Positions 1,032 through 64,000 of a stretch of 64,000 nucleotides of DNA are shown one piece after another. The stretch lies in the IMG/VR virus record IMGVR_UViG_3300042540_001399, positions 124,001 to 188,000 of that record, one strand, 5' to 3'. The position numbers and the translations under genes are program-made. The notes beneath the pieces were generated by a model that saw nothing but the letters and a program-made list of their open reading frames with translations, made no database searches and was not told the DNA's origin. Within the stretch, counting starts at the first letter, position 1; the number at the start of each line of letters is the position of its first letter.

Positions 1032-2414
1032 ATGAAAAAAGGAATATTAGTAGAATCAGGAATTAGGGACATTAAAAAGCTTGCTGATAGATACAAAAAG
1101 GCTAAAATTTATTTTCATCAAGATTTGGATGGTGTAACTACTGCAATTGCTATGAAAGAATATTTGGAAGATAATGGTATTGACGTTGTTGACGCCGAAA
1201 TAATACAATATGGTGATAAAGAATTTGCAATAAAAAAACTTGACGCTGAAGGTGATACGATGCCGGTTTTGGTTGATTTTGCCCACGGAAAACCAATGTT
1301 TGTAATTCACACAGATCACCATGATACACAAGCTGGTGTAGAAAAAGGAACATCTACATCATTCAAAAGTTCAAGGTCTAACGTTGAAACAATATCTCAA
1401 AGTTTATCACCTAAAGAAATTTTTACACAAGAAGACATAACGTTAATATCAACTGTTGATTCTGCAAATTTTGCTCAATACAATATATCAGTTGACGATG
1501 TAATGAAGTATATTTTCAAATTAGATAAGAATTCTGATGTTAAAAGAAATAAAATGTTGTTAGGATTAGTTGCTAATAAATTACTTTTAGCGTTCAAAAA
1601 TAAACCCGGATTTCTTGAAGAATTAGTATTAGACTGTAAACCATCGTTACTGAATATTTTATTAAAGATCAAATCAATTATGAAACGAGAAGGTTTTGAT
1701 GATGAAGAAAAACTCACACAAAATCAACAGGCCTACATCCAAAATATGAATGTTAGCCCCAACGTTAATGTTAGCGGTAACATATTAGTTCAATACGGAG
1801 GTGGATACATGACACCACAAGGTTCATATGATAGATATACACCATTTAAAAACAATCCAGACGCTGATTTTTTAGTAATTGCATGGCCGTTGGGATTAGT
1901 TCAAGCATCATGTAACCCATACAAAAAAGAACGAGCACTTAAGGGTGTTGATTTGGGTGAAATCAAAAATGAAGTATTGGATGAAATGAATCCAGAATTA
2001 CAAAGTATTATTGTACCATTATCAGTTTTGAAAAGAATATCTGAAACAAAAGCAACCTTCAAGTCTGTTGGTTTTACATTTAAGGATTTTATGGCAATTT
2101 ATGGTAACAGTCCATCTTTGAAAGTTTTGGGTAGAAAAGAAAGTTTATTCCCAATATTGGATAACATAATGAATAGACCTTACAGAAAACTAAGTGAAAA
2201 ACAAATTGCTTTATTAGATAAAGTTGTACTAAATGGTAGAGATATCATAAATGCAAATTCTGGGGGACATAAATGTATTACCAATATTTCAGGTATTAGT
2301 TTTCTTTACAGAAAAAAAGATGGTGGAGAACAAAAAAGTTATGTAGATTTAACAAAGCAGATACAAAGTAAGTTTTACGAAATTTTACAGGCAAAAATCA
2401 GTTCTGAAAAATAA
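1032..2414 (+). CDS. DHH-family phosphoesterase with short leader (MKKGILVE)
   Basis: FHQDLDG, LVDF, TDHH and C-terminal SGGHK motifs; TATTTAT at 1020-1026. Confidence 0.7.
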   Translation: MKKGILVESGIRDIKKLADRYKKAKIYFHQDLDGVTTAIAMKEYLEDNGIDVVDAEIIQYGDKEFAIKKLDAEGDTMPVLVDFAHGKPMFVIHTDHHDTQAGVEKGTSTSFKSSRSNVETISQSLSPKEIFTQEDITLISTVDSANFAQYNISVDDVMKYIFKLDKNSDVKRNKMLLGLVANKLLLAFKNKPGFLEELVLDCKPSLLNILLKIKSIMKREGFDDEEKLTQNQQAYIQNMNVSPNVNVSGNILVQYGGGYMTPQGSYDRYTPFKNNPDADFLVIAWPLGLVQASCNPYKKERALKGVDLGEIKNEVLDEMNPELQSIIVPLSVLKRISETKATFKSVGFTFKDFMAIYGNSPSLKVLGRKESLFPILDNIMNRPYRKLSEKQIALLDKVVLNGRDIINANSGGHKCITNISGISFLYRKKDGGEQKSYVDLTKQIQSKFYEILQAKISSEK

Positions 2415-2745
2415 TTTCGTCACCTTCATTTATGTTATATTTTTTACATTCACCACCTGGTAATTCTAAAACAATATCGCCATTTCCATTATATGTCTGA
2501 CACTTACCTTGATTACATGGTTTACAATTGTGATGAATTTTAGTTATAACATCTTCATTTATAAAAATAATATCAAGTGGTATAATACAATTTTTCATCC
2601 AAAAGGAGTGATCCCTACCGTCTAACATGAATAACATACCATCAAAGTCTTCATCAAATTTTTTATTCATCATACCATTTGAAATATCTTTATTTGTCAA
2701 TGCCGACTTGACCCTATAACTATTATTATTTATTACTATGTTCAT
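2398..2745 (-). CDS. DUF192 family protein
   Basis: GMLF, FWMKNCIIPLDIIFI and VLELPGG motifs. Confidence 0.8.
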   Translation of the reverse strand: MNIVINNNSYRVKSALTNKDISNGMMNKKFDEDFDGMLFMLDGRDHSFWMKNCIIPLDIIFINEDVITKIHHNCKPCNQGKCQTYNGNGDIVLELPGGECKKYNINEGDEIIFQN

Positions 2746-2757
2746 ATTTATAAATAT
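2744..2757. promoter_or_regulatory. Palindromic bidirectional TATTTAT-type promoter element
   Basis: ATATTTATAAATAT places TATTTAT on both strands between divergent DUF192 and NUDIX genes. Confidence 0.55.
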
Positions 2758-2763
2758 TGTATT

Positions 2764-3186
2764 ATGAAAGAATTCAAAAGGTATTCGGGTATTGTTATAA
2801 AAAAAGGTAATGAAGTTTTACTATGTAAAAGAAGCCCAAAAAATTCCTTACCTAATGAATGGTCCATTCCATCAGGAGGTATGGAAGGAAAAGAAACGCC
2901 AAAAGAAACCGCAATCAGGGAATTCAAGGAAGAAACAAATATTCAAATAAAAGGGGAATTAAAGTTAGTCGACATACTTAACCTGTATGAGGATGAAGAT
3001 ACAAAAAAAGGTTTAATGTATATTTTTCTTCATGAAACAAATAGATATGTGTTTCCTGAACTTGAATCAGCAAAAGATGGTCATGAACACACAGAATGTG
3101 GGTACTTCAACTTAAAAAACAATCCTATAAGTAAAAAAAATCAAGAATTTGGTAAAATAATTACAAATATTTTGAAAAAATATTGA
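2764..3186 (+). CDS. NUDIX hydrolase
   Basis: Nudix box GGMEGKETPKETAIREFKEET. Confidence 0.9.
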   Translation: MKEFKRYSGIVIKKGNEVLLCKRSPKNSLPNEWSIPSGGMEGKETPKETAIREFKEETNIQIKGELKLVDILNLYEDEDTKKGLMYIFLHETNRYVFPELESAKDGHEHTECGYFNLKNNPISKKNQEFGKIITNILKKY

Positions 3187-3216
3187 TTTTTACCAATTTA
3201 TCACATATTTATTTAA

Positions 3217-3308
3217 CACAAAAAAACATTACACCCCTTTCACTTACTGTAATGGTTTATCAAAACCCAACCCACAAATTAAGTAAAATTTCTTTGTGGG
3301 TTTTTTTA
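3217..3308 (+). ncRNA. Candidate short late non-coding transcript
   Basis: TATTTAT at 3206-3212, CATTACA/TGTAATG hairpin, then AACCCACAAA/TTTGTGGGTT terminator; no credible ORF. Confidence 0.35.
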
Positions 3309-3324
3309 TATACAAAATTTCCCT

Positions 3325-3332: not shown

Positions 3333-3346
3333 TATAAATAAAAAAA

Positions 3347-6454: not shown

Positions 6455-6481
6455 ACTTTTTTTTTAGATATTTATCTGAAT

Positions 6482-7738
6482 ATGAAAACTTTTATTTTAA
6501 CAGAAAAACAATTTGATAAATTAAGTAAAAAACTTATTAGCGAAGCGGTTGGTGTACCTCAAGGTATTTTAGAAGCTTCAGAAAAACTATACAAGTTGAT
6601 ATCTGAAGAGTTAAAAAAAATAAATACTAAAGAGACAGAATATACTTTTTACATCAGGAATCAAAAATTAAAAATATCTGACATAGTTATAAAAACTATA
6701 CATGTAACGATCAACGTTGAAGAGTTGGAAAGTTATGACGGTAAACCCGTAATTGCGTCCATGGGTGTTGCTAATGAATTTAATTTTGATGAAGGTATTA
6801 TGATGCAGGTAAACAAAGTAAGTAAAGAAGTGCAATTAACCTTAAATTATATTGTTTCGGAAAATTGGGAACCAAATGAATTATACGATAATTTTGTTTC
6901 AGATGAAATACAAACTATTTCGGTTATGTCTCATGAATTGAAACACAAATATGATAGGACTAAAAAAACAAAAGGTTTTGTTGGTGATATTTCAGACTAC
7001 CAAGCTTATTCATCAGGTAGGCTTAGGTTTGGCATTCCTATAATTGATCAATTTATGAGATATAGTTATTACATTCAAAATGTGGAAAATCTAGTTAGAC
7101 CAACTGAAGTCTCAACAAGAATGATCAAGAAAGGTATAAATAAAGAAACTTTTTATGATTTCATCACAAATGATGAAACCTTTTTAGAATTAAAGGAAAT
7201 TCAAAATTTTTCATATGATTATTTTATTAAGAGTTTATATGAACAAATGGAAGATATTGACAGTTTAATTGAACATGCTGGTGGGGATCCATCAACTATG
7301 TCTGAAGAAGAAAAGGTGGAAGGTGTTTTACAATTGGTTTATGTTAATTTGGCTAATCTTAAAACTGATTTATTTGATCATTATTTTTATACTTCAAAAG
7401 AAAAAATTGATAAAATGTTTGGGGGTATGTTGAGGTCTCTTTTTGGTCAATCAGATAATTCCAATGAAGGTAAAGAAAAAATTAGAAATAAGTATTGGAA
7501 TTACGTTATGAAATATAAAAATAACGAAATAAAATTTTTCGAAGATGAATGTGAAAGATTTAATTATGTTTCAACAAAACTTCTTAAAAAAATTAGTAAA
7601 ATATATTCTTTAATTCCTGATGATAAAGAAGTTACCAATGAATCAATTATAAATTGGGAACTTCATCACAAACTAATGGAAAAAAAATATGGTAAAAGAA
7701 AAATTCAAACAACATACAATTACAAAAATTTTAAATAA
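6482..7738 (+). CDS. Leader-bearing protein with HExxH motif (possible zincin)
   Basis: SHELKH; leader MKTFILTEKQF; TATTTAT at 6469-6475. Confidence 0.5.
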   Translation: MKTFILTEKQFDKLSKKLISEAVGVPQGILEASEKLYKLISEELKKINTKETEYTFYIRNQKLKISDIVIKTIHVTINVEELESYDGKPVIASMGVANEFNFDEGIMMQVNKVSKEVQLTLNYIVSENWEPNELYDNFVSDEIQTISVMSHELKHKYDRTKKTKGFVGDISDYQAYSSGRLRFGIPIIDQFMRYSYYIQNVENLVRPTEVSTRMIKKGINKETFYDFITNDETFLELKEIQNFSYDYFIKSLYEQMEDIDSLIEHAGGDPSTMSEEEKVEGVLQLVYVNLANLKTDLFDHYFYTSKEKIDKMFGGMLRSLFGQSDNSNEGKEKIRNKYWNYVMKYKNNEIKFFEDECERFNYVSTKLLKKISKIYSLIPDDKEVTNESIINWELHHKLMEKKYGKRKIQTTYNYKNFK

Positions 7739-15561: not shown

Positions 15562-15566
15562 TTGAA

Positions 15567-44599: not shown

Positions 44600-44693
44600 T
44601 ATAGTTTTAGAATAACACTAAAATATAGAAATCCCCACCAAAAAAGTGGGGATTTTTCTTTTTTATATCATTTACATTTACTATATTTTGTAT

Positions 44694-46207: not shown

Positions 46208-46224
46208 CGTAGTATTTATAGTTA

Positions 46225-51841: not shown

Positions 51842-52249
51842 ATGAATTTACAAGAAAACATATCAAGGATTAAACAAATGATGGGACTTCTTACAGAAGG
51901 ACTTCATGACACATATTGGCAAAATGAAGATGGTGACAAAATAACTCTAATTGATTTATTAAATGCAACACAAGACATACCTGTAGAAGAATTTTCCGTA
52001 GAAGAATTAAAACCGCATCTATTAACTTGGGATGGGGATGAAGATGAGGTTAAAAAAATAGAAAGTGCCAATTTACAATACCCAATATTAATATTCGTAA
52101 ATGACGATGGTGAATTTATATCAATTATAGATGGTCATCACCGAGCACAAAAAGCGGTGAGAAAAGGGTTAGAAACAATTAAGGCGAAGGTAATACCAAT
52201 TAATTCTTTACCTAAAAACATAAGAAGAGTATTTTCACATATGAACTAA
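51842..52249 (+). CDS. MNLQE-leader ParB/Sulfiredoxin-like protein
   Basis: ANLQYPILI...IIDGHHRAQKA. Confidence 0.8.
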   Translation: MNLQENISRIKQMMGLLTEGLHDTYWQNEDGDKITLIDLLNATQDIPVEEFSVEELKPHLLTWDGDEDEVKKIESANLQYPILIFVNDDGEFISIIDGHHRAQKAVRKGLETIKAKVIPINSLPKNIRRVFSHMN

Positions 52250-52250: not shown

Positions 52251-53531
52251 ATGAACCTACAAGAATCCATAAGAAGAATATTAAGGGAAGATTTGTTAAA
52301 TAAATCAAAATTCTTTCTAAGAAGAATTAATTTAGATGAGGTTAAAAAATTACTTCCAATCAACGCAGAACAAGTACATGGTGAAACAAAAAGTTATGAG
52401 CAATTCAAGTATGAATTAACTTTAAGAGCCGTGGAGGCAATTATGTGGAATGATTATGAACTCGGGTGGGAAGATCTACCAGAACAAGAGGAAATAGAAT
52501 TTGTTAATGAAGTTTCCAACATGTTTAATAAAACAATCAAAAAGTTATATAATTCTTATAGTGGAAGAATATTAAGGGAAGAAGATTATTCTCCGGCGGG
52601 TAAAGAAATAATACCAAATAAAATTGTGATCCACAAGTCCAATCCGATCTTCAGAAATAAGATAATGGAAAATGGTCTTAAAGTAAGGGCAGGAGAATGT
52701 TACAAAATATATGTTGGTTATGGTGTTAAGTGTAAACCTGCAATTTTTGCAACCAACTCAACGAACAAAAGAGCATGGTTTGATTCAACATACGACGATG
52801 ATATATGGGAAATAAATACAGAAATGATTCCTGATGTAAAGTGGTATAAAGATAGACACTTTGAGTCAAGGTCAAAACATATTGTTACGTTTCAAGACAT
52901 ACCAAAAGAAGCAATAACTTTAAAATATGAAGGAAGTGGAAGTGGAGATGTAGAAAAGTGGGATAAAGATTCGCCAAACATAGTTAGAGAATCCCAAATA
53001 GACCCTTATCTTCTAAGAAGATTTCATGAGTTCGACGACACTTTCAAATTGGTATCATCAAATGTTTATCCATGTGATTTCAGACATCCACAACATTATT
53101 GGAATTACACGATAGAAAGAGTACTGGAAGCTATTTATTTTAATTTTTTCTATGAAACTAAATCCGAATTAAATTGGGAGTCCCTTTCTGATGAAATTCT
53201 TTATCTTCTAAATAGAACATATTATGATGAATTAGTTTCAGACTGGGAATCCAAGTGTAATAATAATATTCATGAAGATTTTTCACCTGAGTTTTTAAGA
53301 AGAATAACTATAATTGATACGTTAATTGACGCAACCCTTTCTTCTATGTACCCATGTGAATATAGTTCTGAAAAAGCTTTTCTTCGTGGTTTATACGACG
53401 AATTATATTGGTCATTTATAGGGGAAGACTTAAAAATTATTGACTATTCAGATATTATTGATTTTATAGAAGAAAACAGAAAAGAAGACATATATGATTA
53501 TTGGGACGAATATTGTGTTCGATTATCATAA
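52251..53531 (+). CDS. Four-module protein: LRR module, ADP-ribosyltransferase-like domain, two more LRR modules
   Basis: VIHKS...IMENGL...IFAT...DIPKEAI; modules separated by ILREE, VRE and IHE. Confidence 0.6.
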   Translation: MNLQESIRRILREDLLNKSKFFLRRINLDEVKKLLPINAEQVHGETKSYEQFKYELTLRAVEAIMWNDYELGWEDLPEQEEIEFVNEVSNMFNKTIKKLYNSYSGRILREEDYSPAGKEIIPNKIVIHKSNPIFRNKIMENGLKVRAGECYKIYVGYGVKCKPAIFATNSTNKRAWFDSTYDDDIWEINTEMIPDVKWYKDRHFESRSKHIVTFQDIPKEAITLKYEGSGSGDVEKWDKDSPNIVRESQIDPYLLRRFHEFDDTFKLVSSNVYPCDFRHPQHYWNYTIERVLEAIYFNFFYETKSELNWESLSDEILYLLNRTYYDELVSDWESKCNNNIHEDFSPEFLRRITIIDTLIDATLSSMYPCEYSSEKAFLRGLYDELYWSFIGEDLKIIDYSDIIDFIEENRKEDIYDYWDEYCVRLS

Positions 53532-53532
53532 T

Positions 53533-53610
53533 TAACTATGGTTTTCAATTACTCGGTTCATAGTCCTTCACTTCGTTCGGAATTCACCTCATAATTTAAT
53601 ACCATAGTTA
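53533..53610 (-). other. Hairpin with three tandem G.A pairs and a C-GAA-G triloop
   Basis: Minus strand: TAACTATGGT...GA-GGT-GA-AT-TCC-GA-AC-GAA-GT-GA-A-GGA-CT-AT-GA-ACC-GA...ACCATAGTTA. Confidence 0.7.
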
Positions 53611-53650
53611 TATTTATTATACATAAAGGATAACAAATCAAAAGACAACA

Positions 53651-53974
53651 ATGTCACTTAAAAAAATAATTAGAAAAGTATTGATTCAAGAATCGGGAAA
53701 CATAGATCCTTACATACTTCGAAGACTTGATTTAGATAAGTTCAATGATCTCTTAGATAAAGGAAAAGTATATATGTTTTATGAATCCAATTCATTAGAA
53801 GAATTCAAATGGAAGTTAGTTACGGCAACATTAGAAAACTATCATTACTACAAGTATGAAACTGATATAGATACAAGTGATGGATATTTCGATCAAACAA
53901 TACAAAGTCTTATCAACTTATTTGAGCCCAAGTTAGAAACTATTTATAACAGATTAAAAAATGAAAGAGGATGA
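53651..53974 (+). CDS. Leader plus LRR-motif module
   Basis: KKIIRKVLIQE; IDPYILRRLD. Confidence 0.65.
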   Translation: MSLKKIIRKVLIQESGNIDPYILRRLDLDKFNDLLDKGKVYMFYESNSLEEFKWKLVTATLENYHYYKYETDIDTSDGYFDQTIQSLINLFEPKLETIYNRLKNERG

Positions 53975-54594
53975 ACAAACAATTAAATCCATTTTTGTTA
54001 CGTAGAGTTGATCCTAAAGTGTTAGACGCCGAATTTGAGGATTGTTTAGATACTGCCACAAACATGTACAACAGGGGAAAAGACAAAAGTTCGGTATCAT
54101 TACCTCAGTTTAGAAATAGAGTCATATCCATGTTGATAGACTCAATTCACTATGATATACATAGCTCTGTTCCAGAAGAACTTCAGTGGTATGATGATGT
54201 CTTTTATATGTTAAAAGATTATTATGGGGGTAAGATTAAAAAAAGATTAGATCAATTAAATTCCAAAACTATAAATGAATCCAAGTTACAAATTTATATG
54301 TTAAGAAGAATAGATGTTGTTGAACATTACCTTAACAATTTAAGTTCAAAAGATGTTTGTATACACTGGTCAGACGATGAGGCTTTAGAATATTCTAGTC
54401 AAATACTTTCAGACATGTCAAGAATTATTATTGATGAACTACACTATGTTGATTCAGAATCATATGTAGACAAGTATGATGAAATATATCAATTTTTAAT
54501 TGATCTTGATTATCCGAAAAGAATAGTAGACTTCTTTTATGATTCATTAAAAACTTGTGAAGATAGACATAGATATAAATTTAGAAAACCATAA
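53971..54594 (+). CDS. Two LRR-motif modules
   Basis: NPFLLRRVD and INE-SKLQIYMLRRID. Confidence 0.65.
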   Translation: MNKQLNPFLLRRVDPKVLDAEFEDCLDTATNMYNRGKDKSSVSLPQFRNRVISMLIDSIHYDIHSSVPEELQWYDDVFYMLKDYYGGKIKKRLDQLNSKTINESKLQIYMLRRIDVVEHYLNNLSSKDVCIHWSDDEALEYSSQILSDMSRIIIDELHYVDSESYVDKYDEIYQFLIDLDYPKRIVDFFYDSLKTCEDRHRYKFRKP

Positions 54595-54676
54595 AATAAT
54601 ATAACACATTCACTCATTACAAAGGGGACCTCAATCGGTTCCCTTTTTCATTCACTCATATGTTATACTATTTTAT
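54591..54676 (-). other. Second tandem G.A hairpin
   Basis: 19-bp outer stem (two G.T); ATGAGTGAAT paired with ATGAGTGAAT; inner AAAGGG/CCCTTT and ACC/GGT. Confidence 0.7.
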
Positions 54677-55796
54677 AAAACTATAATCCCCCCATTTAGT
54701 TAAGTCCTAATATATTGTCCCCCCATTTAAGTTGACCAATGATTACACATTTTGCGTAACACATTTTGTATAATGTTATGGTACAACTATCAAGACAACT
54801 TTGTACCAAAGTTATATTTTAGTGTTGTACTTGTATTATATTTTGGTGTGGTGATTAGTTACTAAATGAATGTGTATATGAAAAGGGTATAAACATACCC
54901 ACTTATTACCACTTATTAGAAGTTATTACCACTTTACTATGTGTTATTAGTTGTGTAGATTTTAGTGGTCAGGATGTTGAAAAACCCACTAAAGTGGTCG
55001 TTGAAGTTATCTATTTAATGATCTATAAGTGATCTACTAACGACATAAATGTCTGTCCACGGCAACAGTACCATTAATATATGTTTTTCGCTGGAGAATA
55101 GACATAGTGAAAAAAGTGGTTCTGTAGGGGTCAAGAAGGGGGATTTTTTAGGTCTGTAGATAGCAACAGGTACAATTTCGGTGGTAGAAAGTGGGAAGTA
55201 TAGAGTGGGGAAAAGTGGTAGAAAACCCGTAAAGAGATTGTGTCGTGTGTAACGCTCGACTGACATTTTGACAAAAACAAGTTTTTTAACATAATTATTT
55301 ATTAACAATTCCCCCTGGTGATGGAGATATTAAAAGTTTTCAACAAAGTAATTGACAAAAGTGGTGATACCATAACCCTGACATATTGTCACCAAAACTA
55401 TTCTGGTACATGTGTGTATAAAGAACATAACTTGGTTGGTAAAAATAAACCTATCAGACAAAGGTTCTACACCCTTGAGTCATCAGACATGGGGGATGTA
55501 TTAGAATATCTATTTACACAGGGACATATTAAAGATGGGGACTTCAATACCATTGGTCCCCAACTACAAGACTATTCATTAGGTCTTATATATGATCATC
55601 CATTTGATCAATAATATAACGACGAATAAAGTTAGTTATATTTGACGTGGGGAAGTAGTCCAAAAAGAAAGCACACACTGTAAGACCAAACAGAAATAAC
55701 AACGTGATTACAACATAGACCATAAGAAACATTTCCATAACAGAATAATAACACACACCATTCACCTTTTCAAGATCATTAGTATATTTATTATTA

Positions 55797-55920
55797 GAAG
55801 TTCATTTTCCCCACAGTAGGGAATTAGTTGTTCAAGACCCAGGCGGTCTGTAAAGTTCAAGATGAAGTTGACAACATAATTTTCTTAAGGATCCCTATTC
55901 GGTGATGGGGAATTTTTTAT
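55797..55920 (+). ncRNA. Candidate structured late sRNA
   Basis: TATTTAT at 55785; stems TTCCC/GGGAA, AATTAGTTG-TCAA/TTGA-CAAC-TAATT and AGACC/GGTCT; terminal hairpin with T tract. Confidence 0.4.
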
Positions 55921-56010
55921 GCTCCCTTATTTTTTTTATAAGGCATCCTGCCTCTGATTGAGCTCCACGGGTTGTTCCCCCGAGCCCGACTTAACCTTAT
56001 CATCAGTGTC
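55921..56010 (-). ncRNA. Candidate structured sRNA behind a host-sigma promoter
   Basis: TACCTTTG on the minus strand at 56015-56022; stems CTGAT/ATCAG, GGGCTC/GAGCTC, GGG/CCC and GGCA/TGCC. Confidence 0.45.
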
Positions 56011-56347
56011 AATACAAAGGTACGGGATTAATTTGACACTACCAAATTTTCCCCCATGTTTATTTGATCAAAAGTTATTAACACCACTATAGTCGTTTAC
56101 TAAGTTATCAACATGACAGTGTGTCACATGGGGGACCAATAGAGTTTGGCATACCCCTACCATAGGGGGATCCACAAGAATTACCCCCTCCCCCCTCCCG
56201 TATGCCCCCTTATATGACATATTGTCAGGGGAAAAAGGGGGGTCAATCCCAAATATAACATATTCGTAAAAAAAATTCTGGAAAAATTTTTGGGAAAATT
56301 TGGAAACTATACTATCCCATATTATACAGTAAAGTATATTTATCAAT

Positions 56348-56653
56348 ATGGAAGAAGGTTTAAGATGGTTTTTAAGAAGAACAAATGATCCTGAAATAAT
56401 AAATCACATCGAGGAACTTGTGGAAGAGGGTTTTGATTATGAAGACGTTTGTGATTACATCGGTAGGAAAAGAGAATATGTTAGGGAAATAGTTCGTGGG
56501 TCAACTATTACTTTTATAAATTCTTATGATGGATTAGATAAACTAAATGAGTCAAGTGTGTTAAGGATTTATAATTTTATTATGTCCAGATTTCTTGAGT
56601 TAATTACGGACCATTATGACTCTAATATCGAAGATTGTGATGGATTCTTATAA
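56348..56653 (+). CDS. LRR-motif module protein
   Basis: WFLRRTND...VCDY...EDC; TATTTAT at 56337. Confidence 0.65.
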   Translation: MEEGLRWFLRRTNDPEIINHIEELVEEGFDYEDVCDYIGRKREYVREIVRGSTITFINSYDGLDKLNESSVLRIYNFIMSRFLELITDHYDSNIEDCDGFL

Positions 56654-56715
56654 TGTGTAAAGTAAAACCCTTACAATCTGTAAAGTGAAACCCTTATAAT
56701 CTGTAAAGTCGACCC
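56647..56715 (+). repeat. Three tandem 23-bp repeats
   Basis: CTTAYAATSTGTAAAGTnnAcCC; TGTAAAGT at 56656, 56679 and 56702. Confidence 0.85.
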
Positions 56716-56812
56716 CTTTTTAATTTACCTTCAAATACTAAAAAAAATTTCTGGAAAAATTTTTCAAAAATATAGGTTTTAGACATTCTACATATTTATT
56801 GGAAAATACATT

Positions 56813-57526
56813 ATGGAACTAAATAGATTTAAACAATTATTGGAATCAAGCTTGGGGGATGTTAGACCACTTATATCTGAACAAGAAGTAAAAGATTTTT
56901 CAGCTCAGATTTTTGAAGAACTAAAAACAAACGGATTTACAATATCAAATGTAAACGCCAATCTTGTTCAAGCGTCAAAGGCGTCACTTACACTTTTATT
57001 TCAAGTACAGGTTGATAAGCAACAACAGAAATATTATAGACTAATTGAAATAGATTATATGTTGGCGGTTGATCCAAATAATGAAGGGATTTCACCTGAG
57101 TTATTAAAAACATTTACAGGTGTGGGTGCCAGTGGGGAGTACATTGGTCCTGTTTATTCTAAACCAACAGAAGAAGATAAAGAGTTTTTAAAAACTTTAT
57201 CCAACAAAGATAGGAACATGATGACCAATAGTGGACCTACAGAAAAAAGAGCAGGTTTTAAAATGTGGAAATCTAATCTTGGGGGTCTTGATCTTACGAC
57301 TTTGGGACAATCAAAAGAAACCACAAGTATATACAAGTACATGAAAGATTTTTATGCTTTGGGTGTTACCGCACAAAAATATCAAAACTTTAATAGTGCT
57401 AATTTTGCAGGTCAAGTTAAGATTGTTGGTCAGGAATTAAAATCGGCAGCCGCTCCTATGGTTGACAAGGCTAAACAAGGAATACAAAATCTGGCATCTA
57501 AGGTCAAAGGAAAACTACAACGTTAA
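56813..57526 (+). CDS. MExNRFKQLLES-leader hypothetical protein
   Basis: 24-aa leader nearly identical to 60624; bodies unrelated. Confidence 0.7.
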   Translation: MELNRFKQLLESSLGDVRPLISEQEVKDFSAQIFEELKTNGFTISNVNANLVQASKASLTLLFQVQVDKQQQKYYRLIEIDYMLAVDPNNEGISPELLKTFTGVGASGEYIGPVYSKPTEEDKEFLKTLSNKDRNMMTNSGPTEKRAGFKMWKSNLGGLDLTTLGQSKETTSIYKYMKDFYALGVTAQKYQNFNSANFAGQVKIVGQELKSAAAPMVDKAKQGIQNLASKVKGKLQR

Positions 57527-57636
57527 AAATTAATAAAAATAGAAACCCTACCTCATCGGTGGGGTTTTTTGTTATTGACAGTAGTATTTATTTTTGTTAA
57601 TATTATTTAACAAATAAACTTATAATTTAACTTACC

Positions 57637-57807
57637 ATGAAAAGTTTAACTTTGATGGGTCTTTTGTTAAGTTTTTCGTTGATGGTATCATCATGTAATT
57701 CTAAAAAAGAAGAAACAACTACAAACAATGTTTCTACTGAAAATGTTGGAACTGATAGTACTACAACCGAAAACGTATCAAATGATTCCTTGACTGTTAT
57801 TAAGTAA
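57637..57807 (+). CDS. 56-aa lipoprotein (below the ORF-track cutoff)
   Basis: MKSLTLMGLLLSFSLMVSS-CNSKKEE followed by a T/N/S-rich tail; flanked by terminators. Confidence 0.7.
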   Translation: MKSLTLMGLLLSFSLMVSSCNSKKEETTTNNVSTENVGTDSTTTENVSNDSLTVIK

Positions 57808-57886
57808 AAAATAATTTATAATCTGTGAATTATTTATCCCCCACTTTTATCGGTGGGGTTTTTTGTTTTACATTATATTTATTGAT

Positions 57887-58213
57887 ATGAAAATTATTAT
57901 AACGGAAAGACAATATAATAAAGTAATTGTTCTAAGAAGAATTAATGAAATAATGCATGAAGCCTTGTTAATGATTAGGGATGATGGGGCTTTTTATGGT
58001 GACGTAAACTTTTGTTATCATTACCCCACATTTGAAGGTTTTATGGAAGATATGGTTGAGGAAATTATTCGCAATTATGAATATTTTAATAATTTCGACA
58101 TATCGGATTTTATCTATGATGAAGTTGGTTTTGAAAACTTTATTAACATATTGATTGATGTTCACGGTGATGAGATTAGAGAGTTCTATAACTCAAAAAC
58201 AGAAGATTGTTAA
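57887..58213 (+). CDS. Leader plus LRR-motif module
   Basis: MKIIITERQ...VLRRI...C...EDC; TATTTAT at 57876. Confidence 0.7.
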   Translation: MKIIITERQYNKVIVLRRINEIMHEALLMIRDDGAFYGDVNFCYHYPTFEGFMEDMVEEIIRNYEYFNNFDISDFIYDEVGFENFINILIDVHGDEIREFYNSKTEDC

Positions 58214-58214
58214 C

Positions 58215-58544
58215 ATGAAAATCATTATCACAGAAAATCAACTATTTCTTATTAGACGGCTACAACAATTTGTTGATCTTGTTGAAGATCAGATTGATGG
58301 GTACGAAAGAAATGAAGATGGTGCTTGGTGGTGTAAATATAATACCCCCGATTCTTTTTTAGAAAATTTTAGAGATAGATGTATCGAGGAGTTTGTTAAT
58401 AACAATTGGGAATTCTTTCATGATAACAGTGAAAATGGGGGATCTAATATGGATATAAGTTTATTATATAATATTGTTGATCAAGATTACGGGAACTATA
58501 TTAAAAATCTTTTTGTTCGTAAGTGTAATTATTATCGTTATTAG
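58215..58544 (+). CDS. Leader plus LRR-motif module
   Basis: MKIIITENQ..LIRRL...WC...KC; start moved to 58215. Confidence 0.7.
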   Translation: MKIIITENQLFLIRRLQQFVDLVEDQIDGYERNEDGAWWCKYNTPDSFLENFRDRCIEEFVNNNWEFFHDNSENGGSNMDISLLYNIVDQDYGNYIKNLFVRKCNYYRY

Positions 58545-58564
58545 TAAAATTCTTCCTTTTTATT

Positions 58565-58630
58565 GGGGGCCGGATACCGCGGGTCCCGACTTCGTCGGAA
58601 AAATCGACCGACCGAACCCTTCGGGTTTTT
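58565..58630. other. GC-rich intergenic element with two GAA/TTC triloop hairpins
   Basis: CCGAC-TTC-GTCGG and AACCC-TTC-GGGTT (C-GAA-G on the minus strand); GGGGCC/GGTCCC. Confidence 0.6.
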
Positions 58631-58737
58631 AATAGTTCATATTATATCTTACTTAAGTGAATCTTTCAGAAAAAGGTGGTTTCCCTACTTGACTTAATGG
58701 TATTTACTGTTTATAATTTTATACACAAAAAAAAGTT

Positions 58738-59172
58738 ATGACAATTAAACAAGCACTGAAACAAAAAAATAAACTGATCAAACAGATCGGTGAAAATACA
58801 AAGTTGATGCAAGAGTACAACTCAATTGAAGTTGGAAATGAAAGACCATATAGCTCAAACGAACTATTGGTTGAAATAACTAAAGACACAAAGGAGTTGG
58901 CAAAGTTAAAAACAAAAATTCACATTGCAAACACACCAGTGTTAGAAGACATCTTTTTTATGTCGGAGTTAAAATCAATGACTCAATCACTTAAAAAAAT
59001 GGATTGTACCGAAGGGAAGTCAAATAGAGATAGGTACCGATTGGAAAGTGAAAGTATTAAAACCTCAGAAATATCTTTGGTTAAACGAAATGAAACAATC
59101 AAAGAGTTGGAAGCTCGAATTGAAGAAATCCAAGATCGATTGGATATATTCAACGCAACCACTCAAATTTAA
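58738..59172 (+). CDS. DUF6847/DIP1984-like coiled-coil protein
   Basis: MTIKQALKQKNKL...YNS...LKTKIHIAN...IQDRLDIFNATT. Confidence 0.6.
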   Translation: MTIKQALKQKNKLIKQIGENTKLMQEYNSIEVGNERPYSSNELLVEITKDTKELAKLKTKIHIANTPVLEDIFFMSELKSMTQSLKKMDCTEGKSNRDRYRLESESIKTSEISLVKRNETIKELEARIEEIQDRLDIFNATTQI

Positions 59173-59347
59173 TATGGTTTGTGGGTAGGGTCAAAATGAT
59201 ATGTGTTCTACAATTAGAGACTGAATAGTCAGATAATTGATCGTGATAAAGTAATGGTCCCAAACTCATTATTCAAAGACTCAAAAGTCATTTGATTAAA
59301 ATTTAAAACTCTTGATGACATAATTTTAATCCTCGAAACAAACTATA
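59173..59347 (+). ncRNA. Candidate 175-nt structured RNA in 3' UTR
   Basis: UAUGGUUUGU/ACAAACUAUA and AGGGUCAAAAU..UAUGU/ACAUAAUUUUAAUCCU long-range stems; terminator at 59351-59378. Confidence 0.6.
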
Positions 59348-59400
59348 TGGAACCCTCACAGAAATGTGGGGGTTTTTTAGTTGTAAGATATTTATTTCAT

Positions 59401-60021
59401 ATGAAAATCATTGTTACCGAATCACAGTTAAGACGATACCTTGTTAAAGAATCTACAGAAGAATCTGTTGATTTGGAAATGAATCAATCAATAGACACAA
59501 CAATAAATGAACTACACCCCAACGTTATTCCAAAATTCCAAAAATTAGTAAACGCGTGGAAAGCTAAGGGATACAAATTTAAAATTACCGACGGATTTAG
59601 AACATTTGATGAACAAGAAAACGAATTCCAAAAAGGAACTAGTAAAGCTCGTGGTGGTCTTGGGATTCACAATTATGGTCATGCGATTGATGTTTATATG
59701 TGGAATGGAAAAAATTGGGATAAACCATCTGACGCAATGTTAAAAGTTGCCGTGAACAATGGTTTTGAATCATACGGTCTTTCTTGGGGTTGGGATTTTT
59801 ATCACGTACAATATACAAAAGAATTCACAGGTCAAAAAGGTGGTGATGCTAATTTCATAAAAAAATACGGAAAACAATTAATCGATTCTTATTCCAAAAT
59901 TTCATCTGAAGACAAAAAGAAAATGAAAAAAAATATTGACGCTAAATTTAAACAGGGGAATGGCGGTTACAAAGATTTAATTAATAAATGGTTGGACTTA
60001 TATAGCCCCTTCAAAGATTAA
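59401..60021 (+). CDS. Leader-bearing M15 family peptidoglycan peptidase
   Basis: GFRTFDEQ, HNYGHAID and WDFYHVQ; MKIIVTESQL; start moved to 59401. Confidence 0.8.
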   Translation: MKIIVTESQLRRYLVKESTEESVDLEMNQSIDTTINELHPNVIPKFQKLVNAWKAKGYKFKITDGFRTFDEQENEFQKGTSKARGGLGIHNYGHAIDVYMWNGKNWDKPSDAMLKVAVNNGFESYGLSWGWDFYHVQYTKEFTGQKGGDANFIKKYGKQLIDSYSKISSEDKKKMKKNIDAKFKQGNGGYKDLINKWLDLYSPFKD

Positions 60022-60268
60022 AATTTTTTTGACAAATATTTTTTTTATCATTAATTTTAAATTTGAAGATGAAAAATTTAGGATTGTTTATTGCAGGAAT
60101 TGTTACCGCAATTTTGGCTTTGTTATATTTACCACCATTTATAATTTATCTTATTGGTTGTTTTCAGATTGGGTCATGGATTGGATCTTATATTCAAAAC
60201 AAAAGATTTGAAGATTAATTAATAATTGGTAACTTATACTGTTTTTATTTCACAAATATTTATTTTAT

Positions 60269-60568
60269 ATGGTGAATATACCCACATTTTTACTCAGAAG
60301 ATTTGACGGTCACAAGATAGAAAAGACGATGAAAAAAATTGCCGGTCAAGTTTATTTTGGTACTGACAACAAACAAGAATTCAAAGATGAACTTGTTTAT
60401 AGAACTCTTTCTAATTATTTTTGGACAAAATATAATTTCGATATTACACAACTCAGTGACGATGAATTGATATCTATGAATGAATTAATTTTTAAAATCT
60501 TTGAACCACTTATGAATGTATATTATTCAGGTCTTAAAAAAAATTACCCGAGTCCAAAAACAAATTAA
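60269..60568 (+). CDS. LRR-motif module protein
   Basis: IPTFLLRRFD; TATTTAT at 60257. Confidence 0.65.
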   Translation: MVNIPTFLLRRFDGHKIEKTMKKIAGQVYFGTDNKQEFKDELVYRTLSNYFWTKYNFDITQLSDDELISMNELIFKIFEPLMNVYYSGLKKNYPSPKTN

Positions 60569-60623
60569 TTTTATTTTATTAAAAAATTTTTGAAATTCAT
60601 AAATATTTATAATAAAAATATTT

Positions 60624-61130
60624 ATGGAAACAAATAGATTTAAACAACTTTTAGAATCAACTCTTGGAAATGTTAAACCATTAATTTCTGAACAAAGAGT
60701 AAACCAATCATCAATTCAAACAGTTGAACAATATGTTGTAAAATGTCTTACAGACATTAACAATTTCATTTTAAAAACAAACAAGGAACAAAAGAAAAAT
60801 GTACCAATAATTAAATATACCGTTAAAAGAATGAATGTTGCCGCTGATCCATCATACGGGACAAGACAAACTGTAGAAGTTCCTCAATATACCTTGATGA
60901 TAAACGGAGTACAGGCACCCGCACAATTAGATTTTGGTGTTTATTTAAATAACCCAAATACTTTTTTTAGAATTTGGAAAGATACTTTAGGTAATACAGA
61001 TTGGTTATTGAAAAACATCAAAGATACGCAAATTCTTCCTATAATACAAAATATAGATAAAAAATACTACGATTTATCTTTTAGAGCAACGCAGCAAGGT
61101 AACAAACAATCCCCTGTAAAAAAACCATAA
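60624..61130 (+). CDS. MExNRFKQLLES-leader hypothetical protein
   Basis: Leader shared with 56813. Confidence 0.7.
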   Translation: METNRFKQLLESTLGNVKPLISEQRVNQSSIQTVEQYVVKCLTDINNFILKTNKEQKKNVPIIKYTVKRMNVAADPSYGTRQTVEVPQYTLMINGVQAPAQLDFGVYLNNPNTFFRIWKDTLGNTDWLLKNIKDTQILPIIQNIDKKYYDLSFRATQQGNKQSPVKKP

Positions 61131-61218
61131 GACACATAAAGTTACTTACAGAAAAACCTCATCTTCAAAAGATGAGGTTTTTTATTTTCTTTATGTATTT
61201 ATAACGTATATATTAATT

Positions 61219-61401
61219 ATGACAAACGAACAAAAAGCACAAAAGTATAACGAACTAATGTACGAATATACTAGAACACAGAACAAAATTTCATCAATCA
61301 AAGGTGAATCATTGGAATTAAATCAAAAACAAATCCATGAAGTAAGATTATTGGAAGACAAGTTAAGGTTTTTGATGCAAATGGCAGCGAAACTTCATTA
61401 A
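61219..61401 (+). CDS. Small coiled-coil protein
   Basis: Resembles ORF 21150-21332 (ISSIKGESLELNQ vs ISDIKSKNYELSQ). Confidence 0.55.
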   Translation: MTNEQKAQKYNELMYEYTRTQNKISSIKGESLELNQKQIHEVRLLEDKLRFLMQMAAKLH

Positions 61402-61454
61402 TTTTTATTTTTTTTATTGTATTTATAATAAAAATAAATTACCAAATAAAAAAA

Positions 61455-62093
61455 ATGAAAAACTTTATAATAACTGAATCAGAAAAACAAAGAATTTTAG
61501 AAATGCACCAAAGTGCAACGTCAAGACAATATTTAAAAGAAAATGAAGATGAATGGATAGACATGTCAAATGATATGGAAACAGAATCAGATTTTTCAAT
61601 GATAGATTTAAAAAATGACAGAAATTTCAAAAGATTGGTTTCATTTCTTAAAAGAAATCCTGATGCCGCTATGGATATCAAAAATTCTTTAGAAATGAAT
61701 ATCAATGAGGCTCAAAAATACTATGATTATAGTGATGATCGTGGAAAAAAAGAAATTACTAGAAATCAGTATCTTAAAAGAAAACTAATTAATTATGGTA
61801 TATTTGGATTATTAGGGGCTGCAATTGGTGCAACAATGGGAGCCATGGCTGGTGACCAAGTTTTAGAAGCCGCTCTTCTTATGGCTGGAATGGGTGGTAC
61901 CGTGGGAGCGGAACTTGCTGGTCAGATTGGTAGAGAAAGAGTCAAAGACGAACCACCAACAGACGAAACTTCGATAGAAGATGACGAAACATTAAGTGAA
62001 CGTTGGTCACAAAAATACAAAAGATCAATAGATTGTAATAACCCAAAGGGTTTTTCACAAAAAGCCCATTGTCAAGGTAGAAAAAAAAGATAA
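61455..62093 (+). CDS. Leader-bearing protein with Gly/Ala-rich membrane hairpin and C-terminal WSxKYK...HC peptide
   Basis: MKNFIITESEKQRILEMH; GLLGAAIGATMGAMAG; LSE-RWSQKYKRSIDCNNPKGFSQKAHC. Confidence 0.65.
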   Translation: MKNFIITESEKQRILEMHQSATSRQYLKENEDEWIDMSNDMETESDFSMIDLKNDRNFKRLVSFLKRNPDAAMDIKNSLEMNINEAQKYYDYSDDRGKKEITRNQYLKRKLINYGIFGLLGAAIGATMGAMAGDQVLEAALLMAGMGGTVGAELAGQIGRERVKDEPPTDETSIEDDETLSERWSQKYKRSIDCNNPKGFSQKAHCQGRKKR

Positions 62094-62153
62094 ACCAAAC
62101 CCCGCGTTAATGTGGGGTTTTATTTTTATGTAATATTTATAAAATAAAAAATT

Positions 62154-63056
62154 ATGAAAAAAGTATTTAAAAAAATTAGTAAGTTGTTTTCCAAAAACAA
62201 AACGGTATCGGTAGATCCAAATACAATCGAAGGTGTGATTGTAAGCACACTTAACACAATTATTCAATCACCACAAGTACAGGACATGACATTCAAAGTG
62301 TCTTCGTCTTGTGATAAAACATCTGTTTTAAACGACATTGAATTTTGTAACGAAGTTTATGTTCACGATAAATATACTTGGAGTGTTGTTGATGATGCTT
62401 GTATTGATGCTTGTAATGTGGCATATGACATTTGTCATGGCGGATGCTCTGCGATAGATTGGACATGTAATAACTGTTGTACTAAAGAATGTAAACAAGG
62501 AAGAGATGCTTGTAAAAGTCTTTGTGGTTATTTAGATATGACAGGAGGTTACGAGTTCAGACTTATGAACATAAAAGGTGTTGGTGGTATTCAAGTAACA
62601 AATGTATATGATATGATACCAAAGTCTGATGTAGATAACGTATTTAGTATTACTATGGATTTAAATGTTCCAAAAGTTACCGCTCAGGCATATTATAAGA
62701 TTTGGCAAGACCCTATTCCTGCTATGACTGGAACAATTCCTGTGGTTGCATCTAATGTTACAGGAAAAGCAACCGGAACTTTAATTATTTCTTGTGATGA
62801 AAATAATCCTTCTGAATCAGGTTACTATTTACATATTGACACAATAGAAATTAACATACCTAAAAATGTATTTGATTCAAATATTTTATTAACTGCGGTG
62901 TCTATCTTTGGAATGGACATTCAATACTTAACAGGTGGTATTGTTGATCTTGATCAAATGTTGTTAGATTTAGCGGACGGTGAGTTGGCAGATGTTGTTG
63001 TTGATGTCTTAAACGATATTTTGGATGATTATAAATTAATGGATGCAAATTGTTGA
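62154..63056 (+). CDS. Cysteine-rich hypothetical protein
   Basis: Dense Cys cluster DACIDAC...CNNCC...C; TATTTAT upstream. Confidence 0.6.
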   Translation: MKKVFKKISKLFSKNKTVSVDPNTIEGVIVSTLNTIIQSPQVQDMTFKVSSSCDKTSVLNDIEFCNEVYVHDKYTWSVVDDACIDACNVAYDICHGGCSAIDWTCNNCCTKECKQGRDACKSLCGYLDMTGGYEFRLMNIKGVGGIQVTNVYDMIPKSDVDNVFSITMDLNVPKVTAQAYYKIWQDPIPAMTGTIPVVASNVTGKATGTLIISCDENNPSESGYYLHIDTIEINIPKNVFDSNILLTAVSIFGMDIQYLTGGIVDLDQMLLDLADGELADVVVDVLNDILDDYKLMDANC

Positions 63057-63059
63057 TAA

Positions 63060-63548
63060 ATGAAATCCAAATTAGAAAGTCTAAATGATACTAGTTTATC
63101 AAGATATCTTAATTATGTAAAAAACGCATTATCTAATGTTGTTGATATTGAAACGATAGAATTCACTGAATTTTATGAAAAATTAACTTATGATCTTGAT
63201 TTAGAAAGAAAAATTTTTTCCCCAATAAGAGGTGGTGATAGGTATGATGTAGAATACATCTTTGCATGTTTTTCATTAAATAATTACGGAAATAATAATT
63301 TCGACCCGAATGATTTAATGAGACCTGATCAGAAAGGGTTTACAGTTAACTATATGCTAGATGAAAGAGAATTAACTAGACGAACCTACAGGATAAAGAT
63401 GGAAACTTATCTTACGCGAAGAGATTTTGACACATCATATCTTTGGCAACTTAAAAATGAAGACGAAATCGATCCATGGTCATGGGAACATGTTGACACA
63501 GATTATTTGGATAGTGATTTTGTGGATGATGATTTTGATATACATTAA
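63060..63548 (+). CDS. Acidic hypothetical protein
   Basis: 162-aa ORF in operon. Confidence 0.6.
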   Translation: MKSKLESLNDTSLSRYLNYVKNALSNVVDIETIEFTEFYEKLTYDLDLERKIFSPIRGGDRYDVEYIFACFSLNNYGNNNFDPNDLMRPDQKGFTVNYMLDERELTRRTYRIKMETYLTRRDFDTSYLWQLKNEDEIDPWSWEHVDTDYLDSDFVDDDFDIH

Positions 63549-63559
63549 AATTTTATATT

Positions 63560-64000
63560 ATGAAGTTTATTATAAATGAAAACCAATTTGCCGGATTAAG
63601 ACAGAAACTTAGAAATTCAATTGAAACGGTAGGTGTATACGAAACTTTGAGAAGGTATAATATTACATTAAATATTTTATCGGTAATCTTCGATGGGAAC
63701 ATGCCTGACACATCTTGTTATGATTTGTATGAATTAATTAGAGTATATCTAAGACAAAAAAAGTTCAAAGAAAAAACTTATAAAAATTTGACATTTAAGT
63801 TTAGCTTCGATTCTATGGGTGGGGTTTTAGAATTTGAATGTGAAGATAAAATAAAAAATGATTTTGTAACAGCGTTTGCTACACCATATTGGGATGGAGA
63901 GTGTCACCTTCCAATAGATTTTCAATATTTTGGTTTTATTGGTGGAGGACCAGAATCCGAATTTGAAATAAGTGGTGATTATTTCTACATTGAAGATTTA
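63560..64000 (+). CDS. Leader-bearing protein, truncated by window end; paralog of 16733
   Basis: MKFIINENQF...; open to end of window. Confidence 0.65.
   Translation, partial: MKFIINENQFAGLRQKLRNSIETVGVYETLRRYNITLNILSVIFDGNMPDTSCYDLYELIRVYLRQKKFKEKTYKNLTFKFSFDSMGGVLEFECEDKIKNDFVTAFATPYWDGECHLPIDFQYFGFIGGGPESEFEISGDYFYIEDL

Follow-up and report, generated by a model that had tools for sequence, protein, structure and literature searches.

Short interchangeable N-terminal leaders ending in a T4-type cutting site on unrelated late proteins of a large freshwater phage, most likely for loading into the virus head

In phage T4 the internal proteins IPI-III, Alt and gp24 carry N-terminal capsid-targeting sequences (CTS) that are removed by the prohead protease gp21, which cuts after L/I-x-E (PMC9026906). 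The T4 literature describes diverse internal proteins that share only a CTS (PMC3012670; PMC5694885) and already sees the CTS as a way for T4-like phages to load varied proteins (PMC3012670; PMC9026906). In the giant phages phiKZ, SPN3US and 201phi2-1, dozens of head proteins are present, head and ejection proteins are processed by gp175/gp245-type proteases with cleavage C-terminal to Glu, and paralogues share conserved N-terminal propeptide starts (PMC5694885). Encapsulation peptides of bacterial microcompartments and cargo-loading peptides of encapsulins work alike: a short amphipathic helix, joined by a poorly conserved linker to unrelated enzymes, addresses them to the inside of a protein shell. 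At the DNA level, T4-type phages shuffle gene cassettes through conserved regulatory motifs (PMC2839356), including promoter-terminator cassettes (PeSLs).

The 64,000-nucleotide stretch analysed here (the window) comes from a roughly 290-kb freshwater phage, probably of Flavobacteria-like hosts (phylum Bacteroidota), with 29% GC. A first-pass annotation had proposed that about 35 unrelated proteins in the window carry short leaders of four classes ending in (I/L/V)-x-E, tagging them for packaging into the head and ejection into the next host. The observation was confirmed, and the leaders were found where the annotation had placed them. The count was lower: strict profiles identified 27 leader genes in the window and three more were loose matches, 30 in total, while 36 of 230 ORFs in 149 kb of the same genome carried strict leaders. 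Five classes were distinguished rather than four, and classes B and C graded into each other. Of the body functions named in the annotation, M15/VanY, Ntn hydrolase, 5'-3' deoxyribonucleotidase/HAD and ParB/Srx-like could be supported, as could a DUF2237 domain and a weak DHH match (1032); SGNH, ferritin-like and ART-like assignments were not reproduced by Pfam or PHROGs.

Among 92 proteins of at least 80 aa, 24 had an N-terminal 12-mer with a partner scoring BLOSUM62 >= 25, while internal 12-mers gave 0-4 and shuffles gave 1.4 (maximum 9). The bodies were unrelated: residues 31 onward formed only three small BLASTP groups. Pfam domains started after the leaders (DUF2237 at residues 19-20, P-loop kinases at 29-32, M23 at 74), and AlphaFold2 (AF2) models gave the leader as a separate, lower-confidence helix. 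The possibility that there is no system, and that the similar starts are leftovers of one ancestral domain in a large paralogous family or a composition effect, is remote. MK.. starts and I/L/K/E/N-rich sequences are expected in so AT-rich a genome and a few bodies are related, but shuffles and internal controls exclude composition, the unrelated bodies include complete domains, and one body family carries leaders of different classes; these results already contradict that reading.

All 36 strict leader proteins had an [ILVM]xE site with E at positions 5-30, against 84 of 173 other proteins (p = 2e-10); the motif is thus common in this AT-rich proteome, occurring in 49% of non-leader proteins. 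Of 64 class C '..MMG' leaders, 57 had the site within 6 residues of the G, against 4 of 64 twenty residues further on. In the coordinates below, all genes and motifs are on the forward strand unless stated, and a slash within a sequence marks the candidate cut.

Class A was defined as MKIIITExQ[LYF]xx[IL]. It contained 6482-7738 (418 aa; MKTFILTEKQ..LISE/A; TATTTAT at -13, positions 6469-6475), which stands alone inside an early region; 16733-17362 (209 aa; profile score 19.1; TATTTAT at -11); 31963-32157 (64 aa, Cys-rich body; MKIIITEKQ; in the operon behind TATTTAT at 30779); 34812-35537 (241 aa; MKIKITEDQ..QINE/G; TATTTAT at -21); 36892-37266 (TATTTAT at -13), the first gene of an operon with three class B genes; 57887-58213, behind a terminator-like hairpin and TATTTAT at -11; 58215-58544; 59401-60021, with a VanY/M15 peptidase body (Pfam VanY from residue 37; PHROG endolysin families); 61455-62093 (212 aa); and 63560-64000, which runs out of the window (183 aa in L127, a sequence base-identical to window positions 53060-64000). 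The gene at 29095-29457 (GTG start, MKLEITENEK, body of the FLxRR family) was a loose member below the strict threshold. The conserved block of class A runs to position 13, past the first ITE. That E is therefore probably not the cut, and the functional cut is probably at a second [ILV]xE 10-20 residues further on, in contrast to the cut at the first ITE implied by the first-pass annotation.

Class B, MK[DE]LI[RK]xIL[KR]EE, contained 29794-30351 on the reverse strand (185 aa; MKDLIKTILRE; TATTTAT at -13); 37266-37883 (205 aa; MKGIIRQILNNE); 37883-38383 (166 aa; MKKIIRNILHEE); 38431-39426 (331 aa; MKNIIRDILKEE); 46225-47166, with an Ntn hydrolase body (TATTTAT at -12, positions 46213-46219); and 53651-53974, with an FLRR-type body.

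Class C, MNLQENIxRI..., had the subtypes ..RIKxMMG[ILV]x[NT]E and ..RILREE. A tandem array was headed by 47417-48304, a class C/B hybrid leader with a DUF2237 body (Pfam match from residue 19), which is preceded by a terminator-like hairpin and by TATTTAT at -11 (positions 47406-47412). The array continued with 48306-48716 (136 aa); 48716-49198, with a 5'-3' deoxyribonucleotidase-like body (phrog_2643, E = 1e-15); 49195-49950, a loose member with only the first seven residues of the leader (MNLQENI, then divergent) but the same 21-nt start as its neighbours; 50312-51094 (260 aa; ..MMGLVTE/V); 51091-51840 (249 aa; ..MMGIINE/N); 51842-52249, with a ParB/Srx-like domain (DGHHR); and 52251-53531 (426 aa; RILRE subtype, FLRR-type body). 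In the AF2 model of 51842 (pLDDT 86.9) the leader formed a helix at residues 3-14 and the first body strand began at 25; Foldseek returned ParB, Noc and Srx, and 117 of 117 homologues had E before GLHDT. Outside the array were a class C-like gene at 32150-34648 (832 aa; ..INRMRDLMGIKTQINE), with a paralogue downstream at position 18132 of sequence L217 of the same genome, and a loose class C gene at 39452-40666 (404 aa; MNLKNELLRI; TATTTAT at -11), whose body is related to 4887 and 11673.

Class D contained 56813-57526 (237 aa; TATTTAT at -20, positions 56793-56799) and 60624-61130 (168 aa), which share a 24-residue leader. The gene at 40718-41143 (141 aa; MKRIVRLTESDLARIVRRVIREE), placed in class A by the first-pass annotation, was split off as class E, MK[RK]I[VI]RLTESDLxRIVxRVIxE. 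Three further strict copies on other bodies lie downstream of the window at window-frame 69316, 100728 and 116736, together with one weak match at 79942.

TATTTAT, a late-promoter-like motif, peaked at -11 to -13 and -20 to -23 from the ATG. Leader genes comprised 34 of 135 genes in TATTTAT units and 2 of 57 in host-type TAnnTTTG units (p = 2e-4). Both exceptions are likely artefacts: they lie in the operon behind 36892, and one rests on a motif inside the upstream gene. Many late mRNAs would have almost no 5' UTR, four tandem class C genes share an identical 21-nt start, and several leader genes are terminator-promoter-gene cassettes. These features could suggest that the conserved starts act at the nucleic-acid level, as translation-initiation signals in a host without Shine-Dalgarno pairing or as recombination linkers that let cassettes be swapped. 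This is very unlikely. Across relatives, synonymous codons at conserved leader residues varied freely, with the same frequencies as in the bodies, indicating conservation at the peptide level; internal cistrons carry the same leaders as 5'-proximal ones; and early genes with the same short spacing have no leaders. Recombination may spread the leaders but does not explain why the peptide is conserved.

Walking along the metagenomic contig that carries the window revealed the phage's own T4-type head module about 70 kb downstream. Sequence L276 of this contig holds TerL, a T4-type portal (Portal_T4), bS21 on the reverse strand, a Peptidase_S77 protease at 15296-16012, an acidic 585-aa scaffold-like protein and a gp23-type capsid protein. 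The protease matched Pfam S77 at E = 1e-22, with Peptidase_S80 matching only below threshold. It is 33% identical to T4 gp21 and keeps the ELNHP His and the SSRG Ser, equivalent to T4 H85 and S140; a relative's protease matches PDB 5JBL. Most genes of the module follow TATTTAT, which precedes the protease, scaffold-like, capsid and other head-module genes in this phage, and also occurs in this position in relatives and in the cultured Flavobacterium phage immuto. The capsid protein has an invariant ..LINE/A.. candidate maturation site. This candidate does not align with the T4 gp23 site (..FLTE/AE..), as T4's GSFLTE aligns with GSFET. A ClpB-like gene lies near the head module.

The strongest evidence for cleavage came from the Ntn hydrolase at 46225, with a predicted propeptide at residues 1-20 and nucleophile Cys21. 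Its AF2 model (pLDDT 85.7) has an Ntn fold whose first strand starts at C21, and Foldseek returned AAT, BSH, NAAA and PVA. In 117 of 117 homologues the Cys follows E at P1 and I/L/V/M at P3, while P2 and the leader class (A, B, C or other) vary. This is the T4 gp21 rule, and the family shows, on predicted fold and conservation, that removal of the leader exactly at this junction is required for function. Ntn hydrolases can process themselves, however, so the E/C junction could serve autoprocessing. Because the propeptide masks the nucleophile, and because several bodies are cell-wall hydrolases that would be harmful if active early (VanY/M15, M23, NlpC/P60), the leaders could instead keep enzymes inactive or soluble until removed in the cytoplasm or autocatalytically, without addressing them to the head. 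This zymogen reading is unlikely. Most bodies (ParB/Srx-like, DUF2237, kinases, pterin dehydratase) have no reason to need a pro-form, five stereotyped classes shared by unrelated proteins fit a common binding partner better than protein-specific inhibition, and in T4 the same kind of leader is a proven targeting signal (PMC9026906).

The favoured explanation, held with moderate confidence, is that the leaders are N-terminal propeptides of a T4-type capsid-targeting system. In this view the genes are transcribed late from TATTTAT promoters together with the head genes, and a 10-25-residue leader docks the protein onto the scaffolding core of the assembling prohead. Classes B, C, D and E are predicted amphipathic helices, and class A is a short hydrophobic stretch followed by a helix. 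The S77 protease would then cut after [I/L/V]-x-E at the end of the leader, freeing the mature protein inside the head, from which it could leave with the DNA. For at least the Ntn hydrolase the cut would also create the catalytic N-terminal Cys, so that the enzyme would become active only after head maturation. The analysis itself established that the leaders exist, are modular and under peptide-level selection, and are tied to the late-promoter-like motif, that the protease, portal, scaffold-like and gp23 genes share their genome, and that the junction before the Ntn Cys is invariant; that the S77 protease makes the cut, that this happens in the prohead, that the leader is the targeting signal and that the proteins are ejected are inferred from sequence alone.

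The interpretation of the first-pass annotation was partly supported, and every check it had proposed that could be done in silico (the promoter link, a gp21-family protease and a motif on the capsid protein) came out in favour. Thirty-six or more cargo types per genome, many of them metabolic-looking enzymes (kinases, pterin dehydratase, nucleotidase), far exceeds any described head cargo. Only 25% of late genes carry a leader, and paralogues of one body family exist with and without it. The predicted helices separated from the body, the class A conservation past the first Glu and the ClpB-like gene would also fit permanent docking helices that recruit late proteins to another structure or partner (tail, baseplate, membrane, or a chaperone such as the ClpB-like ATPase). 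This is unlikely, since the Ntn hydrolase cannot work unless its leader is removed exactly before Cys21, and most '..MMG' leaders end in [ILVM]xE.

Compared with T4, both phages have a T4-type head module with an S77 protease and N-terminal leaders of 10-25 residues, ending in L/I-x-E, on otherwise unrelated late proteins; T4's own leaders, taken from the T4 record, have the same style and length. The scale is greatly enlarged, with at least 36 candidates in 149 kb against about 5-8 in T4, and with at least five distinct classes rather than one loose type. The leaders are often longer, with a proposed targeting block, a spacer and then the cut site. The cargo bodies are mostly enzymes or orphans rather than small basic DNA-binding proteins, the host phylum is Bacteroidota, and the late promoter word is TATTTAT, not TATAAATA. 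The T4 system rests on experiment, whereas the present one is inferred; this expanded form is widespread in bS21-type jumbo phages. In the phiKZ-type phages the motif is S/A/G-x-E or A-x-E, while here P3 is I/L/V as in T4; their propeptides are often longer than 100 residues, and the protease here is a clear Pfam S77 member. The microcompartment and encapsulin peptides are an analogy only: there is no homology, those peptides are not removed by a maturation protease, and the shells are not virions. As with PeSLs, several leader genes (47417, 57887, 59401) are single-gene units bounded by a terminator-like hairpin and a promoter motif. PeSLs, however, are early-promoter DNA elements outside the coding sequence, while the conserved element here is a translated peptide behind a late-type motif.

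The window had a GC content of 29%, contained no Shine-Dalgarno sequences, and carried nearly all of its genes on one strand. Two short words recurred just before start codons: TAnnTTTG, which the first-pass annotation took for the host-type (early) promoter, and TATTTAT. The window was 100% identical to three IMG/VR contigs of 274-291 kb, and its proteins occurred on many lake metagenome contigs. No close relatives were found in the GenBank phage collection, as a megablast search with window 46-54 kb and a tblastn search with the 832-aa protein both returned nothing.

The short N-terminal leaders reported by the first-pass annotation were present at the positions it gave, and the observation held. 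N-terminal 12-mers were far more alike than internal 12-mers or shuffled sequences. Of 92 proteins, 24 had an N-terminal 12-mer with a partner scoring at least 25, against 0-4 for internal 12-mers and 1.4 for shuffles, and an explanation by composition was rejected on this basis. The bodies after residue 30 were unrelated, apart from three small groups. Pfam and PHROGs returned nothing for most bodies. Five leader classes were recognized. Classes A, B, C, and D were as described in the first-pass annotation, with B and C joined by hybrids such as MNLQENIRRILREE, while the fifth, class E, was MK[RK]I[VI]RLTESDL.. at 40718. Using profiles and decoy-based thresholds, 27 window genes qualified strictly and 3 loosely, and 36 of 230 ORFs qualified in 149 kb of the same genome. 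The same leaders sat on many other bodies in dozens of related viral contigs.

The leaders behaved as a peptide signal and not as a nucleic-acid signal. Conservation started exactly at the ATG, and at conserved leader residues synonymous codons varied with the same frequencies as in the gene bodies; this codon test led to rejection of an RNA-level explanation. Pfam domains began after the leader: DUF2237 at residues 19-20, P-loop kinases at residues 29-32, and M23 at residue 74. Two AlphaFold models showed the leader as a separate helix of lower confidence ahead of a well-predicted body. Four tandem class C genes (48306, 48716, 49195, and 51091) shared the exact 21-nt start ATGAACCTACAAGAAAACATA, which occurred in this genome only at these four copies inside the window. 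In gene 49195 the leader broke off after seven residues. This arrangement looks like recent duplication or gene conversion.

TATTTAT starts clustered at -11..-13 (28 genes) and -20..-23 (20 genes), while TAnnTTTG clustered at -12 (9 genes). Assigning genes to units gave 34 leader genes among 135 genes in TATTTAT (putative late) units and 2 leader genes among 57 genes in TAnnTTTG (putative early) units (p = 2e-4). Both exceptions lay in the operon behind 36892, and one rested on a motif inside the upstream gene. TATTTAT preceded the portal, protease, and scaffold genes in relatives, and the protease, scaffold-like, and capsid genes in this phage. Late transcription of the head genes of the clade has been reported (PMC9723584), whereas late expression in this phage is inferred from the motif alone. 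In the cultured Flavobacterium phage immuto (locus L277, MW353175 110411-160410; L numbers designate fetched loci), TATTTAT preceded the terminase (TerL) and portal genes and lay near the sheath gene. Immuto (vB_FspM_immuto, a cultured relative grown on Flavobacterium sp. LMO8) also had leader-like starts, including a pair of proteins sharing M..NF.L..FL.ENKLT, making it a possible laboratory model. Both promoter-like words ended only about 5 nt before the ATG, and many early and late mRNAs would therefore be leaderless or nearly so, which may connect to the phage-encoded ribosomal protein bS21. At about 47381-47417, 57840-57887, and 59350-59401 of the window, a G+C-rich hairpin with a T-run was followed by TATTTAT and then a leader gene, forming single-gene cassettes resembling morons or shuffling units.

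The presence of a prohead protease in the genome had been named beforehand as a test of the head-targeting reading. Loci fetched through the class C pattern included T4-like head modules in the order TerL, Portal_T4, bS21 on the opposite strand, Peptidase_S77, scaffold, and Gp23, which is the arrangement of the freshwater bS21 phages predicted to infect Bacteroidetes (PMC9723584). Similarity searches could not single out the copy belonging to this phage: neither the best 80 loci nor the best 120 proteins matching a relative's protease included this genome, and the family formed a dense cloud at 80-88% identity. A 124-aa marker gene that sits next to the capsid gene in relatives was not syntenic here. 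The module was reached by walking, 10 kb at a time, along JGI contig Ga0453182_0000022, whose first fetched piece was base-identical to window 53060-64000.

This walk passed more leader genes, 17 tRNA genes, two-component genes, a GH19 endolysin with a holin, and a ClpB-like gene. The 17 tRNA genes formed a cluster (L218:17430-21822) about 35-40 kb downstream of the window, which itself had none. At L219:15110-19319 and L275:10800-12860 (reverse strand), the phage carried GAF/PAS histidine kinases, a response regulator, and a ClpB-like double AAA+ protein. Near the GH19 endolysin and holin, a 513-aa protein (L273:13600-15141) combined Peptidase_M23 and Phage_lysozyme2 domains behind a class C-like start (..LTRIRSLMSINE).

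About 70 kb beyond the window the walk reached TerL, the portal (Portal_T4), bS21, a 238-aa Peptidase_S77 (L276:15296-16012), a 585-aa acidic protein, and a 629-aa Gp23 protein. The bS21 gene (L276:14532-14717, reverse strand) lay between portal and protease and places the phage in the bS21 jumbo-phage clade of PMC9723584. The protease scored 80.9 bits against S77 (Pfam E = 1e-22) and was 33% identical to T4 gp21, with the equivalents of the catalytic H85 and S140 conserved. A relative's copy matched the solved T4 gp21 structure 5JBL. The acidic protein between the protease and capsid genes was scaffold-like but had no family match.

T4 gp21 cuts after L/I-x-E (PMC9026906), and the T4 gp23 site read ..FLTE|AE.. 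in an alignment. All 36 leader proteins had an [ILVM]xE site with E at positions 5-30 (2.1 on average), against 84 of 173 (49%) of the other proteins (0.64 on average). Of 64 class C '..MMG' leaders, 57 (89%) ended in such a site within six residues. The capsid protein had an invariant ..LINE|A.. 16 residues before the conserved core. This is only a candidate maturation site, as it did not align with the T4 site, and conservation of the capsid protein's N-terminus was uniformly high and could not single out the site.

The decisive case for cleavage was gene 46225. AlphaFold (pLDDT 85.7) and Foldseek placed its product among the Cys-Ntn hydrolases, with a predicted alpha-beta-beta-alpha fold and hits to isopenicillin N acyltransferase (AAT 2x1c, E = 4.5e-9), bile salt hydrolases (BSH), NAAA, penicillin V acylase (PVA), and acid ceramidase; a PDB sequence search with the Ntn family profile returned nothing. 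The first predicted strand began at Cys21, the putative nucleophile, and such enzymes need a free N-terminal nucleophile. In 117 of 117 homologues with a recognizable CT[IV]A motif, the residue before the Cys was Glu and P3 was I (75), L (35), V (6), or M (1), while P2 varied. P3 was never S, A, or G, and the junction therefore did not follow the S/A/G-x-E motif of phiKZ-type propeptide processing. The 17-28-residue propeptide belonged to class A, B, C, or other variants, and E20 and C21 were invariant in 78 aligned sequences. Ntn precursors are not known to need Glu at P1, and the pattern is that of the gp21 rule, although the junction could in principle serve self-processing. A second family, that of 51842, was ParB/Srx-like with a DGHHR motif and had Glu before the conserved body start in 117 of 117 homologues, but these were close relatives.

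The T4 leaders, read from the T4 record, were similar in length, style, and pattern, for example T4 gp24 and class B, or T4 Alt and classes A and D, with sequences too short for a significance test. The T4 literature already describes internal proteins as a diverse set sharing only a capsid-targeting sequence (CTS), and states that the first 10 residues suffice for packaging and are then removed (PMC3012670; PMC9026906; PMC5694885). The mechanism proposed here is thus already known from T4. What differs is the number of tagged proteins, the several distinct and exchangeable leader classes, enzyme cargo, the host phylum, and a two-part grammar consisting of a targeting block, a spacer, and then the cut site. 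This grammar was clearest in class A, where conservation ran to position 13 and the predicted cut in Ntn homologues with class A leaders lay 15-20 residues further on. A literature search found no prior description of such leaders in Flavobacterium or jumbo phages, though it did not extend to virion proteomics in the papers on immuto.

The first-pass annotation interpreted the leaders as tags for packaging enzymes into the head and ejecting them into the next host, and this interpretation was partly supported. The analysis itself establishes modular leaders conserved as peptides, a gp21-family protease within a T4-type head module on the same contig, and an invariant Glu-Cys junction in the Ntn family; processing in the prohead, sufficiency of the leader for packaging, presence in the virion, ejection, and catalysis by the Ntn hydrolase are inferred. 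Dozens of enzymes as head cargo would be unprecedented, and [ILV]xE is frequent in this proteome. In addition, a body family beginning with F[FL][LK]RR[VLI][DN], common in relatives, occurred with leader B, with leader C, or with no leader (window 49947-50297, 52251-53531, 53651-53974, 53971-54594, 56348-56653, 60269-60568, and 29095-29457). On balance, a model of targeting plus cleavage is considered more likely than not, and cleavage alone is held with somewhat more confidence.

If the leaders are true capsid-targeting propeptides, this clade holds by far the largest and most modular set of addressed head cargo known. Its protease family had 5,849 relatives in public metagenomes at E <= 1e-20 and 565 matching stretches of viral contigs. 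A simple sequence rule (late motif, leader class, then [ILV]-x-E) would mark proteins that a phage brings into the cell before any gene is expressed, and such proteins are a main hiding place of anti-defence and takeover functions. The Ntn hydrolase would be an example of enzyme activation coupled to capsid maturation, and the T4 protein-packaging technology would be extended to phages of Bacteroidota. In this view, the system also explains a large share of the orphan late genes in bS21-type jumbo phages. A more far-reaching and doubtful possibility is that these abundant freshwater jumbo phages carry a pre-made enzyme kit of several dozen different proteins in the head, with the five or more leader classes acting as distinct addresses (different docking partners, copy numbers, or ejection order) and maturation cleavage doubling as an activation switch. 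Leader profiles would then predict virion cargo directly from metagenomic sequence, and the leaders could serve as protein-delivery tags for Bacteroidota.

An 818-aa protein at L130:13449-15905 contained SprB, PKD, and CHU_C domains. CHU_C was read as a Bacteroidota type-9-secretion C-terminal signal, which would support the host assignment. Within window 44057-46207, 44646-45011 and 44975-46207 resembled by eye a UmuD/UmuC-type pair (S24 peptidase plus Y-family polymerase), and 44057-44599 resembled a YceI-like protein.
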